NCBI RefSeq assembly: GCF_003918875.1 | Contig: NW_025767132.1 | Location: 496,001 to 560,000, forward strand | DNA length: 64,000 nt | Direction of reading: 5' to 3' | Source of the DNA: Haliotis rubra | Lineage: Eukaryota | In this document: positions 686-64,000 of the stretch, in pieces | Position numbering within the stretch: the first letter of the stretch is position 1 | Layout of the letters: each line of letters begins with the position of its first letter | Position numbers and translations under genes: made by a program | The notes under the pieces: model-generated | Told to the model about the DNA's origin: nothing | Seen by the model: the letters and a program-made list of their open reading frames with translations, nothing else | Database searches by the model: none

Positions 686-3210
686 CTCACAAGTCCCTGG
701 AAGAATCGAAGACACAAATCAGAAATAAAATTCAGAATTTTATTCAGATTGTACACAAAGCAGAAATGATCGCAACTGGTGATCACCTGCGCTGAAGCTG
801 ATGGTTGTCCCGAGTGCCGAACAGGTCTACATCTGGTCGTGATAACAGGTAGATCTTTGATTGGAAGATCAGAGGCAGTTGTTTCCACTCCGTGAGTGAC
901 AGGGCATCGGCAATGGCATTCCTCATCCTGGGAATGTGTTGGGCTCTGGCCACTGTGTGGAGTGAATCGATCAGATGATAAATTCGAAACATCAACTGAA
1001 GCAGAGCTGCTGATTCTGTCGACCCCTGATGGTTTATGTACAAAATTACCATCGAAATGTCTGATTGAGTATATGAGTGAACCGTAGTTCAACTGCCCAA
1101 TGCCGAACAGCGAGAATGACAGGGCTGAATTCCAATTCGTTGTGATGAAGGGCCCTTTCTCCTGATGACCACTGCTAGGCCACTTAATGGAGAAAGTGAG
1201 CGTCCCAGCTTGAAAGATGTGTCAACGAACAGGTGTTGAGTGGGTATGAAGGGCACCATAGAGACTCCAACACAAACATTCCACTTATCCACGAAAGACT
1301 GAATGTAGTTGTGCAGGAAGACGAATCAACTCCCTGGGGTTGTCGTCCCCGATGTATGGGCACAGAAACATCTGAAGAGGGCGAAGCTGCAGCTGGCCCC
1401 TGTAAGTCAGCTTGTGCCGACGTCAACCACCCTAGTAACTTCTGCTACTGGAGAAAAGTTCTGGGTTGGACCAGCACTAGTGGTGCGTTGCACTGAATCT
1501 TGTCCCACCTCTCCTGGGGCACAAACATCATGACCTGTCGTGTTGAATATTGTCCCAATAAAAAGAAATCATCGGGTCGGTGTTACCTCCGATTTCTCCA
1601 AATTCAGCAGCCATCCTAATTGCGTGAGCAACTCGATGATGAACTGCCTGTGGAGAGGAAGGACTGGATCCTGCTGGGCTTGAACACAGTCGTCGATATA
1701 GTTCTCCAATGTCACACCTCGACAATGCAGGTAGCTTGTTATCGGATTGGGTATCTGAGTAAAAAGCCACGGGGCCGCACATATGCCCATACAGCAGGAC
1801 ACTCCATTGGTATCAATGACGCCCCTTGAAGGTAAATCGAAGATACTTCCAATAGTCTGGATGTATCCGGATGTGAAGGTAGGCGTCTCGCAGGTCGAGG
1901 GACTTGAGAGGTCTAACCACTCTTGCCTCTGACAAAAACATATCTCCTGATATAAGAACGTTCAATAAGTCGAGCAACTACGTCAGTTCTGACGGAGCGC
2001 TCAATGTAGTATGTTCGGCGCATGGAAATTGTCAGTCAATCTACAGGAACGTTCACATTGTAAACGAATTGAAGAAACTCGTACGATCGGTGACCCCAGG
2101 AACGTTTCGGTTGGCCGAACAAAATGATGGTTCGCCAGGTGGAGTGATAAAGGTAGTAGATAGCTGCCTGGTGACAGTCCTTGCATAACTGCAGTGACCT
2201 CTGAACTAAGTGCTTGAGCTAGTCAAACCGTTCACGGGTGTTTTTGTCTGTCACCCTCGATAAGCAGTCTCTCTCGACTGGCTGTCAAAATCCCGACACA
2301 ATCACTCTTACCGGGAATGGCAGCGTTCATTGTTACTAGCATTTAAAGGCTGGACTTGGTATCCGATTCGTGAATTGTTTCGGTGGGATGAAACCGTACG
2401 AAGAGGAGAACGGTTATGTTCCAACCACGCCGATCCACGATTCAATGATGAATGCTTGGATTTAGAAGTTTCCGAGGACTTTGAACGGTCCGAAGAAACG
2501 GATCTACGAGATGAAGTAGATCGCAGGTCTTGTGTAGAGGAAATATCAGTCATTACCACCCTCGCATGCCCATGAGAACTTGAGCTAGGTGAGGAAAGCG
2601 TCCCAAATGCCTTTTAACATTCTCAGACAAATAGGAATCAGAAGAAGCGTCTATAAAATCTTCTTTAGGATACACGGGAGATTTAGAACGGCGAGCAGGT
2701 AGGGTGGGGCGATGTGAATATTGTTTTTAGCGATAGATGGACCAGATCCCGCATAAGCATTCCTGGCCCTATCTGCCAAACGTCTGGCACAAGCACGTTT
2801 GTAAGCTTTAAAATCCTCATTAGACAGTCCTGAACACTTAGGACAACGTTTGTCCCAATCACAACAACCTACATAATCAACACACGATGTGTGTGGGTCC
2901 CAAGCTGAAGAAACTTTATTATGCTGAGCGCACAAGAACAGGCTTAACCATGTTGAGCAAATATCAGATGAAAAAATTTCACGTCCACTCTGTTGAGCAA
3001 CAAGAAAGAGAATGAGTATGGAAGGTGATCACGTGGGTGAGGACTGCGCATGCCACGTGCTGTCACGGCCAAGTGAGCATGGCTAAGGCAGGAAGGCATG
3101 CACAGCACGGGGACAGGGACAAGGAAGGCCTGGAGCAAAGTTTAATACGTTTCCACTCATGGTCGAATGAAGAGAGAGAGGTGCAAGTCGTGAGATAGGA
3201 TAAGTTTAAA
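1..3210 (-). mobile_element. DIRS1-type retrotransposon, family A, internally deleted (no YR in the visible part), runs off the left edge
   Basis: 5' ITR ~3001-3210 related to 15008-15230; gag Cys/His motif DPHTSC..CPKC (2651-2935); RT remnants LDLRDAYLHI and YIDD (~1530-1910); RNase H (LFVDTS, INHQGS); MT-like DLF motif (~800-830). Many frameshifts. Confidence 0.9.
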
Positions 3211-4669: not shown

Positions 4670-25761
<21,092 letters not shown>

Positions 25762-55166: not shown

Positions 55167-57979
55167 CTAGAAGAAGAAGTAATACCCTAACCCATCATCA
55201 TCTGACCATTCATCTTCTACCCTGCAATAGGAAAATATTCAGTTAACTTCAGTATGAAAAAAACAAAAGTCAAGGTAGCCAAATAATACAAAATATTTCT
55301 AATTGCTTCAGTGTTTTAACACAGGATTGAACATATTTCAATTATATCATATCATTTTACTTGATAAAAGTTTGGTTTAATGCCAGAATTTTAGTTATAT
55401 GACATGATTGATGTTCGATTATTAACAAGAGTCATCAGAAGATGAAATGTCCCCCCAGCCCCCACATATTTAAACGAACAAATCATCTGACATCTGAAGT
55501 CCAAATCGTTTCCATGGAAATCATGAGAAATATAAATGCCAAAAATCTGTAAATAGCAAAAGGCACCATTTCAAAATTTGCCTAATATATATGCCAAGTT
55601 CTGTTGAAAGATACTGAACGCTTTTCGAGTTGTGCACCGGAAATGAAGCCCACCCCTCCCTTTTGGGTGAGGTGAGGTGAAATTGGGTTAAACGTCGTGC
55701 TGGAGAATATTTCGCTCATATGACGACGTTCCCTTTTGGGACTAAGTCCTAATCGTTTCCATGGAAAAATAAATATTTCAAAAATCTGCCAAATAGCAAA
55801 AGGCACCAATTTGGCATCTGCCTCACATATCTGCCAAGTTTTGCTGAAAGATTTTAAGAAGTTGTCCAGTTGTGCTCTGGAAACGAAGCCCACCCCTCCC
55901 TTTTGGGACTAAGTTCGAATCGTTTCCATGGAAACAGGGAAAAATAAAAATGACAAAAATCTGTAAATAGCAAAAGGCACCACCTTAGGTTCTGTTTGAT
56001 ATATCTACCAAATTTTGTTGAAAAGTATTGAACGGTTTTTGAGTTATGCTCTGGAAACAAAATGATTACGGTCGGACGGACAGACGGACGAGGCGTCGAC
56101 TATATCCCCCCACATTACATGCCGGGGGGATAAACAGTGAGTGAGTTGGGTTGAACTCTTATCAGTATTACAATTATATTATGGAGTGCCAGCTGGATGT
56201 TAGAGTGAGTCATTGCGTGAGGGTGTGGGGGTGGGGCAGAGCAGTGTGTAGGTTTGTTATTAAGGTTGGGTAGTAGGATTGTTTACATGGGTTTGGTACT
56301 ATGGTTTGGTCAGATAACGGAGGGCTGGATGTCATGGTTGGGTAACAGTTTAGGTTATGGCACTCTGGGTGTCTTGGTTGGGTAACACAGGTTAGGTAAT
56401 GACAGTCTTGGTGTCTTGGATGAATACCACAGGTTAGGTAATGGCAGTCTTGGTGTCTTGGATGAGTACCACAGGTTAGGTAATGGCAGTCTGGATGTCA
56501 TGGTTGGGTAACACAGTTAAGGTAATGGCAGTCTGGGGTTTTGGGTGGGTAACACAGGTTAGGTATTGGCAGTCGGGGTGTCTTGGATGGGTAACACAGG
56601 TCAGGTTATGGAGGGCTGGGTGTCTTGGATGGGTAACACAGGTCAGGTTATGGAGGGCTGGGTGTCTTGGATGGGTAGCACAAGTTAGGTTATAGAGGGC
56701 TGGGTGTCTTGGTTGGGTAACACTGGTAAGGTTATAGAGGGCTGGGTGTCTTGGATGGGTAACACAGGTTAGGTTATAGAGGGCTGGGTGTCTTGGATTG
56801 GTAAAACAGGTTAGGTTATGGAGGACTGGGTGTCTTGGATGGGTAACACAGGTTAGGTTATAGGGGGCTGGATGTCTTGGATGGGTAACACAGGTTAGGT
56901 AATGGAGGGCTGGGTGTCTTGGATTGGTAACACAGGTTAGGTTATGGAGGGCTGGGTGTCTTGGATGGGTAACACAGGTTAGGTTATAGGGGTCTGGGTG
57001 TCTTGGATGGGTAACACAGATTAGGTAATGGCAGTCTGGATGTCTTGGTTGGGTAACACAGTTTAGGTTATAGAGGGCTGGGTGTCTTGGATGGGTAACA
57101 CAGTTTAGGTTATGGCAGTCTGGGTGTCATGAGTGGTAACGGATTAGGCAATGGGCACCTTTTGAAGCCTTTATTTATATGTAGTTGACAGATCACTTAC
57201 ACCTGTACACCATCATCATCATAATCATCTCCTCATCATCATCACCACCTGCTGCACCATCCTCATTCTTATTTCCATAACCTGATGTCAGTTTATCTGA
57301 AATAAATAATAATTATATGAATGCAATAACATAAAGAATAAATATGTTAACAACTACAGAAAGTATCCAGACCTCAAATCCCATAAATACAATATGGCCT
57401 TTTGGTTATGAAAATACACTGTCATCACTTCCATGATCAAAATATATAGAGGATATTATATGAGTGCCCATGTCATACTATGTTTACGACACGAGTGCCT
57501 TAATGTTGGAATTTCTCGAGCGAGAGCGAGGGATATACCGATATTTAGGCATGGGTGTCGTAAACATACTTTGATATGAGCACGAATATAATATTCTGTT
57601 TATTACCGAAGTCATCAAATTGGGGAAAATAACCAAATCTACTTTCAAACATAGGCTGGCTACCGCATGTCACCGCATGTAGAACGCATCGTCACAGAAG
57701 CGTGACGTCATAGCACTGTTCATGACGTTACGTCACCATGACAAAGTGATATTTTGCCCTTGGGCATCGTAATATGAAAAATATGAACCCCCGATATTTT
57801 CGCTCTCGTAGGTTAATAAATGCCAGTACTTACATTCTTGAACATGTTTCCTGGGGTCATACTTGAGAGACCTAATCTCTGCATCAGGATGATCCTTCAG
57901 ATATTGTGCCTTGGCCTCCTCAGCTGCCTTCTCCATCTCTTCCAAGTGAATCTTTTGGGCATCCTCAGTGTTGCTGCAT
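55167..57979 (-). CDS. 3' exons of a protein-coding gene, possibly an RNF216/TRIAD-like RBR E3 ligase tail; upstream exons not found in the window
   Basis: Exons 57834-57979 (CSNTEDAQKIHLEEMEKAAEEAKAQYLKDHPDAEIRSLKYDPRKHVQE), 57201-57296 and 55167-55221 (VEDEWSDDDGLGYYFFF*), all with canonical splice sites. The family guess rests only on recalled resemblance to the post-RING2 helix of RNF216-like proteins. A 1-nt correction near 57230 is needed to read the acidic tail. Confidence 0.55.
55424..56133 (+). mobile_element. Helentron-associated non-autonomous element (HINE/DINE-like)
   Basis: Starts aacaagag, has three internal ~180-bp repeats (aatcgtttccatggaaa...aaatagcaaaaggcacca), a GGAC/AGAC microsatellite and a terminal hairpin atcccccc...ggggggat. 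A 5'-truncated family 2 SINE tail is inserted at ~55668-55729 with TSD tcccttttggg. Confidence 0.75.
56320..57130. repeat. 42-bp G-rich minisatellite, ~19 units
   Basis: Unit ggtaacacaggttaggttatagagggctgggtgtcttggatg. Confidence 0.93.
57449..57598. repeat. Imperfect long inverted repeat (fold-back element)
   Basis: ggatattatatgagtgcccatgtcatactatgtttacgacac / gtgtcgtaaacatactttgatatgagcacgaatataatattc. Confidence 0.65.
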
Positions 57980-58628: not shown

Positions 58629-58981
58629 TGATGAAAATAACATAGGACTGGAAATTTTAACTATAAATTGTATATTTATATACTTATCCTATCTCACGAT
58701 TTGTTCTTCTTTCTCTTGCTTCTACGCTGAGTGGAACGAAAATGAACTTTTTCTGGAGGCTTCTCTTGTCTATAACGCCTGTGTTCCCCAGCCTGCTCTC
58801 CTTATAGGCAGGTCCTTAGTCCCTTGCTAAGCGTGCAGCACGCTCCCCTATCTACCCACGTGACTACCTCAGAGTGATATTCTCTTCTTGGAGCCAATGA
58901 GAGTTAACTGTAACTGTCATAATCTGAGTAGAGGGGAGGCTGGGTGGGCATCCTTCGCATGAAATAGGATAAGTATATAAA
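58629..58981 (-). mobile_element. 3' ITR and partial ICR of a DIRS family A copy, interrupted by the family C element
   Basis: Aligns closely to 9666-9975; 58958-58981 (catgaaataggataagtatataaa) is the reverse complement of its own ITR near 58675-58698. Confidence 0.85.
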
Positions 58982-59277
58982 ATGTAATTTTCTGAATAAA
59001 ATTGATATTTTATACTTATCCTAACTCATGCTCTTTTGCTTGTCTTCTTCTTCTTGCGAACACAGTGGAACACTTGTATCTCCCAATTGAAGCTCCCCTT
59101 CAATGTAAAATCACTAATTAGTAATCACCAAGAGTTGTCTCCTTCCCAGCCATTTGCGCGGGAACGAGGGTGCCACCTTCCGCCACATGCCTCACTCTCT
59201 CCTTATATAGCGAGCCCAACACTTGAATTTTCAGGGAAATCCAAAGTGTTATGTGGGGAGGATGGGAGGGCTTACTT

Positions 59278-59362
59278 CATGAGTCAGGATAAGTATAAAA
59301 TATCAATTTTATGCAGAAAATTACATATTTTTCCTTATCCTGACTCATGCTCTTTTGCTTGT
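59278..59362 (-). other. ICR of DIRS family C
   Basis: 59278-59326 is the reverse complement of the terminus 58982-59030; the remainder (atttttccttatcctgactcatgctcttttgcttgt) repeats the ITR core, as expected for the start of the 5' ITR. Confidence 0.88.
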
Positions 59363-59399: not shown

Positions 59400-59823
59400 T
59401 TTGGATTTAGATAATTAGTGATTTGATAACTGTAATAACTGTAATAACCCTTATGGGAACTTCATAAAGGCACTGAATTAATAATTCCTGCTGTTAAGCT
59501 TATCAGCTGCCATATATGGGTTACTACAATATATAGATATTATGATAAACATAAATAAACTACTCCTAATGGAGAAGTTAACTAAAGTATTTACAACATA
59601 AATACTAGGCTTAAGACTAAGATAGACTTAAGCTTGATAATATAATAGCATAAACTTCATAGAGTTGTTAGCTAATGATATTGTTATGATATAACAGACA
59701 TAGTACTGAGCTTAAGATTATGATTGGACTTAAGCTAAAATATATAATAGCCGCATTAACTTCGTGGAGTTATTAGCTATATAGTACTGTTGTGAAATAA
59801 GCAGTAAAAATCTCGTAAGATTG
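59400..59823 (+). other. AT-rich hairpin array of DIRS family C
   Basis: About a dozen closely spaced short inverted repeats between the ICR and the YR stop. Confidence 0.65.
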
Positions 59824-59825
59824 AC

Positions 59826-60893
59826 TTATCTTCTCCGAGGGACTGTCAACTGCTGTGCGAAGACCATGGGACCGAAATGGTGAATGCCTGAGACGTCCTC
59901 GGTGGTGATATCTCTCAGATAGTGGTTGGCAAACACCATATCGGATCTCCAGAAGCAGCCCTCCATGATGGTATTCAAAGAGCAATTGCCGTAGAGCAAG
60001 TGTTGAAGATAGCGCCTAATTTCATGTGGATTAGATGCTCTTGGAGGGTCGAGTCCTGCAGCCTTGTAGGCAGAGTATGACAGTTCTGATCCATATCGAG
60101 ATACTTGTACATGAGATTTCAGTCTGTGTAGCTGTCGATAGAGGGATGAATAATCGTTTGAGTTTTTTGTTGCCTCAGTTTGGATCGCCGTAGATATATT
60201 TTCAGTGTTCTGACTGGGCATAATGATAGATCCAGTTTATCATGAGGTCCCAGAATTGATGAGAGAGCTGGGACGTGGAATAATCTGTCTGGTTGACCTG
60301 GCAACTGGTTCTTGGCGATGAAATCAGCGTAGTCCCATATGCATGATGTTATGATTGTCATCAAAGCGTGTTCTCTCAGAATCTAGTGCGTGAATCTCTG
60401 ACATCCTGGCTGCTGTTGCTAGGGATAACAGGAACAAAGTTTTCTGTGTCAGAAATTGAATGATGTTGATTCCAGTGGTTCATATGCCTCACTTGTGAGG
60501 TGTTGGAGCACTATATTTAGATCCCATGCTGGAGCCAAACCTCTGTTTCTGATCCTCCGATCGGAATGCACGTAGTAAGGCGAAGTAACTCTGGGGTCTT
60601 TGTCAACTTGACACCCATTCTCATAGTTATGACGGAGCTTAAAAGCTGCGTAGATATGTTGATAATGTTGAGCCTTTTAGACGCGTTTAGTCTGTCGTGA
60701 GGTAACATAAGTAGTCAGCCACTTGTGGATGTGTAGCATTTCTAGCTGTAAATCCTTTCTTTGCAGCATAATTTTCAAAACTGTGCCACTTGTCATCATG
60801 CAAGTTAGTGGAGAAGCACGCAAGGCAAGCGGACTGCTTAGCTGCTCTGGCTGAATAACCTCTTTTGTTTAGACAAGCCTTAATACAGTCCAT
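59826..60893 (-). pseudogene. DIRS tyrosine recombinase (frameshifted)
   Basis: FIAKNQLP, LCPVRTLKIYL, NPHEIRR, CFWRSDMVFANHYLRD; homologous to 10521-11230. Confidence 0.87.
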
Positions 60894-60899
60894 ACGTGA

Positions 60900-62754
60900 A
60901 GTTGGAATGCTTCTGGCTTTCGCGTGCTTGTTTGGTGTGAGGATGTATTAGTAGATTCGAGCGCTTTGGAAGTTGTAGTATTGGTTGTCCCGATTTCTTG
61001 AATAAGAGTTGGAAACAACGTTCTGGCTGGCCAGTAGGGCGCCACCAAAATCATTTGGAGGCTCTGAGTTTGCTTGATTTTCTGTAACACCTGTGGGATT
61101 AACGCTGGTGGCGGGAATGCGTCTAGCGTTGAGTCCTTCCCACGATATGCTTAGTGCGTCCGTTGCCCATGCTAGTGGGTCTGGGACTGGTGATACGAAT
61201 GTTGTCAGCCGATTGTTGAAGCGAAAGTGGCAAATAGGTCTATTAGTGGAGCTCCTATTTTCTTGATAATTTGTGCTTAATATCTCTGTATGGAGCATCC
61301 ATTCTGTCGGCGATGGTAGGTGTGGCCGAGAGAGCGCGCCTGCTATTACATTCTTTGCTCCTGGAATGTGACATGCTCTGACATGTATGTTGAGATTGTC
61401 GATTAAATCGAACAATTGAAAACATAGAGTCAATAGGTTCGGGGACCTGGTTGAGCCTTGTTTGTTCACATAAAATGCCACTGTTGAATTGTCTGTGTGA
61501 ATCATCAATTGGGCATTCTTTAGTAAGTTGCTCCAATGATGTATGTATGCTTACTACTGCTTGCATTTCTAGCAAGTTTATGTGTAGTTTGCTCTCTTGT
61601 TGGCTCCATAACCCTGATGCCGTCCTGTTGGCGAGGTGTGCTCCCCAACCTTGGAGCGACGCGTCTACATAGAGATGTGTTTTCAATTCCGGCTCTATTA
61701 AACAGATTCCATCGCAAACATTCGATCTCTTGGTCCACCATAGTAGGTGAGGTTTGACGTGATTCGGTAGACTGAATGGTTGAGGTCACCGTCGAGATGA
61801 GAGTTGATGAGGACCTGTAACGGACGTAACTGTAGTCTGCCTCTGACTGTCATGTCTTGAGCTGACCTGAGTAGACCTAACAGGCTCTGCCATTGTCGTA
61901 GTGGTAGCGGAGAGAGTAAGGCTTGAGGGATTGTCTGTTGGATCTTGATCCATCGGTCCTCCGGTACGACGATACGATTCTGCGCCGTGAGAAATCGAAT
62001 GCCTAGAAATTGCAGATCTTGCGTAGGTTCTAGGTCCGACTTGAGTAGATTTACTAACCATCCTATCTGTGTTAGTAGGTTGATGATGAGGTTTAACTGT
62101 AGTCTGAGACGCTGTGGATCTGGATCCACTTGTATCCCGTCGTCGAGATAGAACGCACTGCGTAGTCCTTGACGATGTAGGTAAGAGACAATAGGTTTCG
62201 TCACTCTTGTGAATAACCAGGGGGCCGATGAGATTCCGAAAGGTAGTACTTTCCATTGGTAATGCAGCCCGTCTAGTGTAAACCGAAGGTATTTCCTGGA
62301 GTCGGGATGTATTGGGATGTGTAGATATGCGCCTTGCAGATCTATGCTGGCCATGTAGTCTCTGGGACTCAATTAAGTGCCGTAGTTGTGGTAGGTGTAT
62401 CATCCGAAACGCTGGTGGTTTGCGTAAATAGTCTCTGTTGAACGTGCTCATATTGTAGATGAGACGAAACTTTTCCTTGGAATTTTTCTTGGGCACTAGG
62501 AAAACTGGGGAGTAGAAGCCTGGTTCGATGTTTACTTGGTCCAGTACTTCTATGGCCTGCTTGGTTAGGAGCGTTGATACCGCTTCTCTTAACTTTGGTA
62601 GTTGTAGAGCCTGGGAGTCGAACCTCGGAGGGATGACTGTCAGCGGGGGCGTGGCCTGTAGTTGTATTCGATATCCGTGCTGTAGGATGTTGGAGACATA
62701 TGGATCCTCTAGGAATCCCCAGTTTTCCCAGTGCAGTTGAAGGCGTCCCCCCAC
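60900..62754 (-). pseudogene. DIRS pol: reverse transcriptase - RNase H - methyltransferase-like domain (frameshifted)
   Basis: Motifs are distributed over ORFs 61786-62754, 61698-62372, 61255-61686 and 60948-61508. Confidence 0.9.
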
Positions 62755-64000
62755 TTGTGATGGTTGTACTGGAACGGCTGGGGGTGGAAGACTCCAGTCG
62801 TTCCGAACCTGTCCTTCATCGTTTATAGTTGCGGGAGTCTCTGGATGACCTGCCTCTTCCGGATCCTCCCATGTAATTGCCGTAAGGGCGGCGAAAAGAC
62901 TCTTTTGCTCCTCTTACACTTGCCATCTTCCTGTCCCGTGCTTTCTGTAGACCGGAGAACTTCGATTTGCCTGAGTACCTCTGCGAAGTTTGTCTGATGC
63001 CGCTTGCTAGCGTATCCATAGACTTTATCATGAGCACCTCTCTTGAGAGACTTCTTTAGAGACTTTGTCTATGTTTCCATCGAAAATTGACGGTGATGAC
63101 CACGGGGCTGTGTGGAGTGATGCGGTGAAGTTATCACCCCAATTACAGGAGGCGAGGAGACCTTGACAACGAGCCATAGTTATAGCTGCGGATAGTGCTG
63201 TCAAGTGATCCGTTAGGAACTGCTGGTCCTTCTTCTGCATGAGGAGGGCCGAGTAAATCATCCTGTCGTCCTCAGATGGTCATCTATTCTGTAAGTCTTG
63301 GACTTGGCATCGCTGATCATCTTATAGTTATCACCGATATCTTGTGCCTTGTAAAAAGGGTCCATGTTGTGACCTGCAAACTTGTTAGCGTTGAAATGCG
63401 GCACATGTGGTGTCTGTGATTATGTGGCTTTACTAAAGGCTGTATCCAGATTAGCTGGCACCGCTGCTATCGGGTCAATCGGAGGTAAGGTGATTGTGTC
63501 AGCATCATCTTCCTTCATAAGATATGTCTGGGCTGAGTTCTCGTTCTTAGACGGGGAGGAAAGTTCCAGACTATTCACGATCCAATATCTTATTTCTGCG
63601 TCGGAAAATACGATACCATCTTCATCTTCAGACATCGGGTCACAGATAATGTGTTGATGCTCCTCCGATAGTGACTGAGGTGGAGTCCTTGATGATCTGT
63701 ACGTGGATCGAGGAGGTGATCGATGAGGAGATCGGCGAGCAGAATAACGTGGTGAACGGACTGACGAGTGGCGTCTATAAGGTGACCTTCGCGGAGACTT
63801 GCTTGGCGAACGCTGGTAGCTTCGCGAAGCTCTCGGTGAATCCCTTAATGATCTTCTAGATGAGGATGACTTGGAGCCACTTAACCTTTGTGAAGGCCTT
63901 CGTGAAGGTTGAAAGTCTGAGTCGGAGTCATGGGATGAGAGGATCTTGCTTCGCGAACGTCCTCTCTCATCAAGGTCCGAGGTAGGTGATATAGTCGTCC

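Follow-up and report, generated by a model that had tools for sequence, protein, structure and literature searches.

How one DIRS element comes to lie inside the internal complementary region (ICR) of another is the question raised by the right-hand part of a 64,000-nucleotide (nt) stretch of Haliotis rubra DNA (G000:C2242:496001-560000, called the window below), in which a DIRS1-like element of one family, family C, interrupts an element of a second family, family A. Searches covered the window and the rest of the 1.38-Gb eukaryotic assembly, and 10 kb past the window edge were retrieved, coordinates above 64000 being given in extended window numbering. Element comparisons were built on natural copies, and event counts were taken from exact patterns and are therefore lower bounds. 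The comparisons confirm that family C is a clean nested insertion in an older family A element, and copies elsewhere in the assembly suggest that the insertion site was probably chosen by recombination.

Family A sequence at 58649/50-58981 is 85-90% alike to 40 other copies, with the match starting at base 58649/50, and all 40 continue past the point at which the window copy stops, so the left flank belongs to family A, as a preliminary description of this locus had proposed. In nearly all of these copies the arm runs 26 bases further and is followed by A's left ICR; in uninterrupted copies (e.g., L037 and L048), TATACAATTTAT... comes next and leads into the left ICR. The window copy breaks off after ...AGGATAAGTATATAAA (also given as ...TATATAAA), and ATGTAATTTTCTG, the 3′ end of family C, starts at 58983, preceded by different sequence in each of 29 other copies. 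Family C, in minus-strand sense, occupies 58983-65119 (6137 bp) and ends 1119 bases beyond the window. At 65120, the first base after the family C 5′ end, family A resumes with TATACAA... and then its left ICR, answering the question that the preliminary description had raised about the sequence beyond 64000, and its own 5′ end lies at ~68711. The joint between the two families has zero duplicated and zero lost bases, and the insertion point falls in the right ICR arm of family A, 27 nt ahead of A's own junction point. An assembly chimera or a deletion scar between neighbouring elements might be suspected in so repeat-rich a region, where the joint is unspanned by public short contigs, yet C is complete, with both of its proper ends, A picks up again at the very next base, and the same architecture is present at five other loci, leaving an artefact of this kind extremely improbable. 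Random insertion was rejected as well, along with the chimera and the deletion scar.

The exact 23-mer of the family C 3′ end occurs 811 times in the assembly, preceded in 353 cases by C's own left ICR and in 7 by point variants of it, and roughly 430 outer termini are left after removal of the ICRs. A foreign AGGATAAG is located 7-9 nt upstream in six of these ~430 outer termini, compared with ~0.03 expected by base composition, and a seventh case (L005) has a foreign AGGATAAG upstream and a one-base change in the C terminus; the flank enrichment anticipated in the preliminary description is thus found genome-wide. Termini next to a resident-DIRS AGGATAAG amount to about 1.5% (1-2%) of family C termini, while ~98% of sampled family C flanks are non-DIRS, unrelated sequence. 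Spacings of 0-5 and 10-36 nt after AGGATAAG yielded nothing but indel variants of C's own ICR. Seven cases, of which six are exact and one has a mismatch in the terminus, are in the forward orientation compared with one odd case in the opposite orientation. The latter, at G000:C2330:248231-248263, consists of AGGATAAG plus 7 nt joined to the 5′ end of family C, and could represent either an internal ICR deletion or an inverted insertion.

In the window and in C2157, C2331 and C632, family C occupies the right ICR of family A and A resumes exactly after C, the latter three insertions lying in the A arm one base over from the window site. C's own right ICR was struck at the homologous position in C1469 and C2205. 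C2818 has the element in a third family's arm, precisely 7 nt past AGGATAAG, and in C979 and C2695 it follows AGGATAAG by 7-8 nt at the left termini of other elements. When the family A events are compared with one another, likeness is 81-85% on the A sides and 91-94% on the C sides, with no relation between the outer flanks; these flanks together with the diverged A sides identify the events as independent, the same spot having been used independently at least six times in the assembly. All six events checked on two sides (four in A, two in C) lie in a right ICR and in one orientation, an assignment based on the host's left ICR, which follows in each of the six. The right terminus, with an identical 50 nt, was used in none of them (0/6; binomial p = 0.016).

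Ordinary insertions of family C also have a recognizable target. No target duplication was detected in the 23 family C elements with both flanks, and the lack of duplication also emerges from four comparisons of filled with uninterrupted family A copies. The last three bases before the element are AAW, with A at -3 in 26 of 28 flanks, and T is dominant from +7 to +9, being present at +8 in 30 of 37; AAW ahead of the element, combined with TTT at +7 to +9, mirrors C's own junction, in which ...AAAAT is joined to ATGTAATTTT. When a matrix trained on target flanks only (27 and 37 of them) was applied, C's own junction scored 8.9 bits and so exceeded the 99.9th percentile of window positions. The preliminary description had held that the window site mimics this junction; the site does resemble it on both sides, but it falls short of A's own junction point. 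Taking AAT as the shared trinucleotide accounts for all nested events to the base: the target was AAA in the window event and AAT one base further on in the three other family A events. A homology-aligned crossover in the shared AAATAT was tried as a candidate and rejected; it fits C2157, C2331 and C632, and fails for the window and the C-in-C events.

The core matrix raises a rival explanation, in which family C inserts wherever AAW...TTT fits and both the AGGATAAG arm and the ICR context are irrelevant, DIRS arms being used since their homology to C's ends gives top-scoring cores. The A and C right ICR sites, which score 10.4 and 11.1 bits and lie beyond the 99.99th percentile of the window, are consistent with this explanation, as is the C-into-C count (2), which is close to the prediction of a rough model based on the matrix. 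However, this model expects 0.3-0.6 matches in the A and C arms versus 6-7 observed, overall events are roughly ten times the prediction, the right termini were passed over although they carry the same core and arm, and C979 and C2818 have near-zero core scores although each lies precisely 7 nt past AGGATAAG. The core accounts for part of the enrichment, not all of it, and an unaided core preference is considered unlikely.

The feature common to the resident sites is an arm motif, TATACTTATCCT / AGGATAAG, present as four repeats per element in both families. Its core TATACTTATCCT, correctly given in the preliminary description as the terminal sequence shared by A and C, has 4 exact occurrences in 58679-59297, and allowing one mismatch yields 7 in the window compared with 0.4 expected. 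Further arm-like motifs are found in the window at 3197 and 15213.

The nesting is probably best described as recombinase-mediated integration of a C circle into the junction-like right ICR of a resident A element. A double-stranded C circle would be recombined by the tyrosine recombinase of the element with a target bearing AAW and a T-run, through a conservative exchange at the AAW trinucleotide a few bases past the arm motif. As double-stranded DNA, the ICR is by construction a replica of the circle junction, with arm motif, spacer, AAW and downstream T-run in the same arrangement as in C's own junction, and would become a hotspot because it replicates the junction of a relative; since related families share the arm motif, an ICR would be the best junction mimic in the genome. 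The recombinase presumably performs the exchange and is predicted to bind the arm motif, and recognition of the whole ICR, beyond the local core, as a wider two-arm site is suggested by the 6:0 excess of insertions in the ICR over those in a terminal arm of identical sequence. Recurrence, fixed spacing and fixed orientation together fit recombination between junction-like sites, and the exchange is conservative, position-exact, orientation-specific and directed at donor-like sites, as in pseudo-att integration. The attP x attB-like targeting put forward in the preliminary description stands in so far as the events are recurrent and specific in spacing and orientation, but it describes a minor fraction of insertions.

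Several points weigh against integration of a circle guided by the ICR. The contrast between right ICR and terminus, at 6:0, is only modestly significant, and three of nine events do not fall in a right ICR of either A or C, the core scores of two of these three being poor. Judged by core score alone, the right ICR sites of A and C already rank among the top 0.01% of window positions, so that some of the enrichment can arise without recognition of the arm, and the core matrix was built from 27 and 37 flanks. Public runs did not confirm the joint, their contigs being 50-130 nt in length and breaking at repeats, and the support for the recombinase domain consists of a language-model lead and motifs.

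Whether insertion into relatives serves a purpose is a separate matter. Targeting of relatives' ICRs could be an adaptation of family C, whether for landing harmlessly or for putting competitors out of action, and the literature offers some encouragement in that DIRS-1 mobility requires the ICR (PMC7192593) and Dictyostelium DIRS-1 mostly lands in its own copies (PMC5633606). Such sites nevertheless hold only about 1.5% of C termini, family A is already old and diverged, and C's own ICR is also struck; adaptive targeting is already disfavoured and regarded as very improbable. The suggestion of a safe haven fares no better, since the small share of insertions in relatives' sites and the short AAW...TTT core that is all most targets share do not indicate a dedicated safe-haven strategy. 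A further proposal, that the insertion destroys a cis-element needed by the host copy, is unsupported as stated. Copies of family A are 81-90% alike versus 91-98% for family C, and by this measure family A is much older; the window copy is only ~3.9 kb in length with no domains detectable by Pfam, and may therefore have been dead before the insertion. Harm to a host copy by destruction of its ICR is plausible in principle, as Dictyostelium DIRS-1 cannot do without its ICR (PMC7192593).

A wider generalization can be offered tentatively, as a possibility short of probable. Resident double-stranded ICRs may act as a complete second recombination site for the circles of related families, with the conserved 12-nt arm as putative binding site and the cut 4-6 nt beyond it. 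If so, nested copies would constitute a natural map of DIRS recombinase specificity, and young families would knock out the ICRs of older ones, a form of cross-family interference. Hundreds of young insertions in the assembly bear, as a natural data set, on recombinase recognition: they show a junction-like core, keep a fixed distance from the arm and a fixed orientation, and favour the ICR over a terminal arm of identical sequence, which makes what a DIRS recombinase recognises a directly testable question. ICR targeting may also explain the piling of DIRS elements into one another.

The coordinates of both elements are collected in Table 1, and the strings quoted in the preliminary description were all located where it had placed them. 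Family C is bounded by inverted terminal repeats of ~195 bp, and the 28-nt extension is restricted to its 3′ end; together with the ICR and the lack of target duplication, these features identify it as DIRS1-like. Ends were sampled in other family C copies on the 3′ side (29) and the 5′ side (37), ~65 in total, and paired ends span 6.1-6.5 kb. The family C 5′ end at 65119 reads ...AGGATAAGGAAAAAT, as in the 37 other copies. The ICR at 59278-59362 corresponds to the joined ends found at 58983 and 65119, and also at the ~65 other ends. Its circle-junction point lies between 59327 and 59328, and the junction deduced from it (59314-59350) is the real one, matching the 5′ end at 65097-65119 and the 37 others.

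Table 1. Features of the nested family A and family C elements (extended window numbering; ICR, internal complementary region)
Feature	Position	Strand	Remarks
Family A right terminus	58650..58956	-	Outer arm with extension at 58650-58699, then repeat body; flanks differ upstream
Family A right ICR arm, left part	58957..58982	-	CATGA..AGGATAAG plus 8 nt ending in AAA; interrupted here
Family C 3′ end with 28-nt right extension	58983..59010	-	Flanks of 29 copies diverge right before; not in left terminus
Family C right inverted terminal repeat	59011..59204	-	94% inverted match to 64924-65119
Family C right ICR, complement of 3′ end	59278..59327	-	Inverted repeat I2, 94%
Family C left ICR, complement of 5′ end	59328..59362	-	Complement equals real 5′ end at 65085-65119 and 37 other copies
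Putative broken tyrosine-recombinase frame pieces	59826..60364	-	Atlas neighbours and motifs
Family C reverse-transcriptase piece	61701..62372	-	Pfam RVT_1, E 4.8e-16
Remaining family C body to window edge	62373..64000	-	Element end at 65119, then family A to ~68711

Pfam was run on 24 broken reading-frame pieces from families C and A, and RVT_1 was the sole match among them, identifying a reverse transcriptase of Ty3/gypsy-related type in family C. A methyltransferase-like domain after RNase H, another trait of DIRS1-like elements, was matched by no Pfam model in this broken copy. The recombinase pieces of family C had no Pfam match; in Atlas, which provides a language-model lead, family C frames have neighbouring eukaryotic clusters with PF00589 (0.96). 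The same pieces contain CPV..L..YL, H-x-x-R and HY motifs, which we take to be those of a tyrosine recombinase. An AT-rich non-coding stretch (59400-59823) separates the left ICR from the recombinase frame.

Other arrangements of family C occur in the assembly. At L120 (G000:C1890:1351780-1352330), a left terminus directly abuts the right extension of a following, equally oriented C, forming an exact chromosomal circle junction, i.e., a head-to-tail tandem of two C elements. On C1 (G000:C1:10964647-11048474), a stretch of 85 kb holds seven family C ICRs, all on one strand and spaced mostly by 8.7-13 kb with one interval of 23 kb, and comparable runs on C1112, C578, C669 and C69 make DIRS clusters or arrays possible at these loci. 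Flanks are identical within each of the pairs L013/L014 and L095/L114, whose members are on different contigs or separated by 25 kb on C2122; these are duplicated loci or haplotigs and were counted once per pair. Within the window, a second family A right-terminus fragment is located at 9650-9990 and ends after ...GGAGCCAATGA, and a tandem array of 42-bp units (56326-57206; at least 14 registers at 63-89%) is situated immediately to the left of the family A element.

What is new here is a behavioural detail, ICR-exact insertion across families, of a known kind of element. As in animal DIRS1-like elements, family C has inverted terminal repeats, a right extension and adjacent left and right ICRs near its 3′ end, starts with ATT, has an AAT junction and no target duplication, and carries a motif in both terminal repeats and both ICRs. 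In the published DIRS1-like model, exchange takes place at a 3-bp junction sequence common to the target, and no role was given to a motif, 10 nt or longer, that both inverted terminal repeats and both ICRs conserve (Goodwin and Poulter; Piednoel et al. 2011, PMC3266345). The target core of family C fits and widens this model; unlike a 3-bp match only, it comprises AAW and the T-run at +7 to +9, and resident ICRs are recurrent, position-exact targets.

In Dictyostelium, self-insertion of DIRS-1 was described as having no evident sequence preference (Cappello et al. 1984, reviewed in PMC5633606 and PMC7192593), most DIRS-1 copies lie in DIRS-1 clusters (PMC5633606), and recombinase specificity and target choice were stated to be untested in a 2020 experimental paper (PMC7192593). 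Family C resembles DIRS-1 in being a putative tyrosine-recombinase retrotransposon that lands in its own kind, the head-to-tail joint at L120 included. In contrast to the majority self-targeting of DIRS-1, insertion into relatives is for family C a side route taken by 1-2% of termini, with nearly all sampled flanks unrelated, and it is base-exact and crosses family boundaries.

The nested insertions can also be compared with phage-type attP x attB and pseudo-att integration. The crossover shared by C and its target is only ~3 nt, unlike that of phage-type att sites, and the inverted arms are ~40 nt apart here versus 6-8 nt; in a further difference from phage-type integration, we know of no accessory sites for the family C system. 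The likeness lies in an exchange that is conservative and fixed in orientation, in targets that resemble the donor, and in the use of secondary sites at low frequency.
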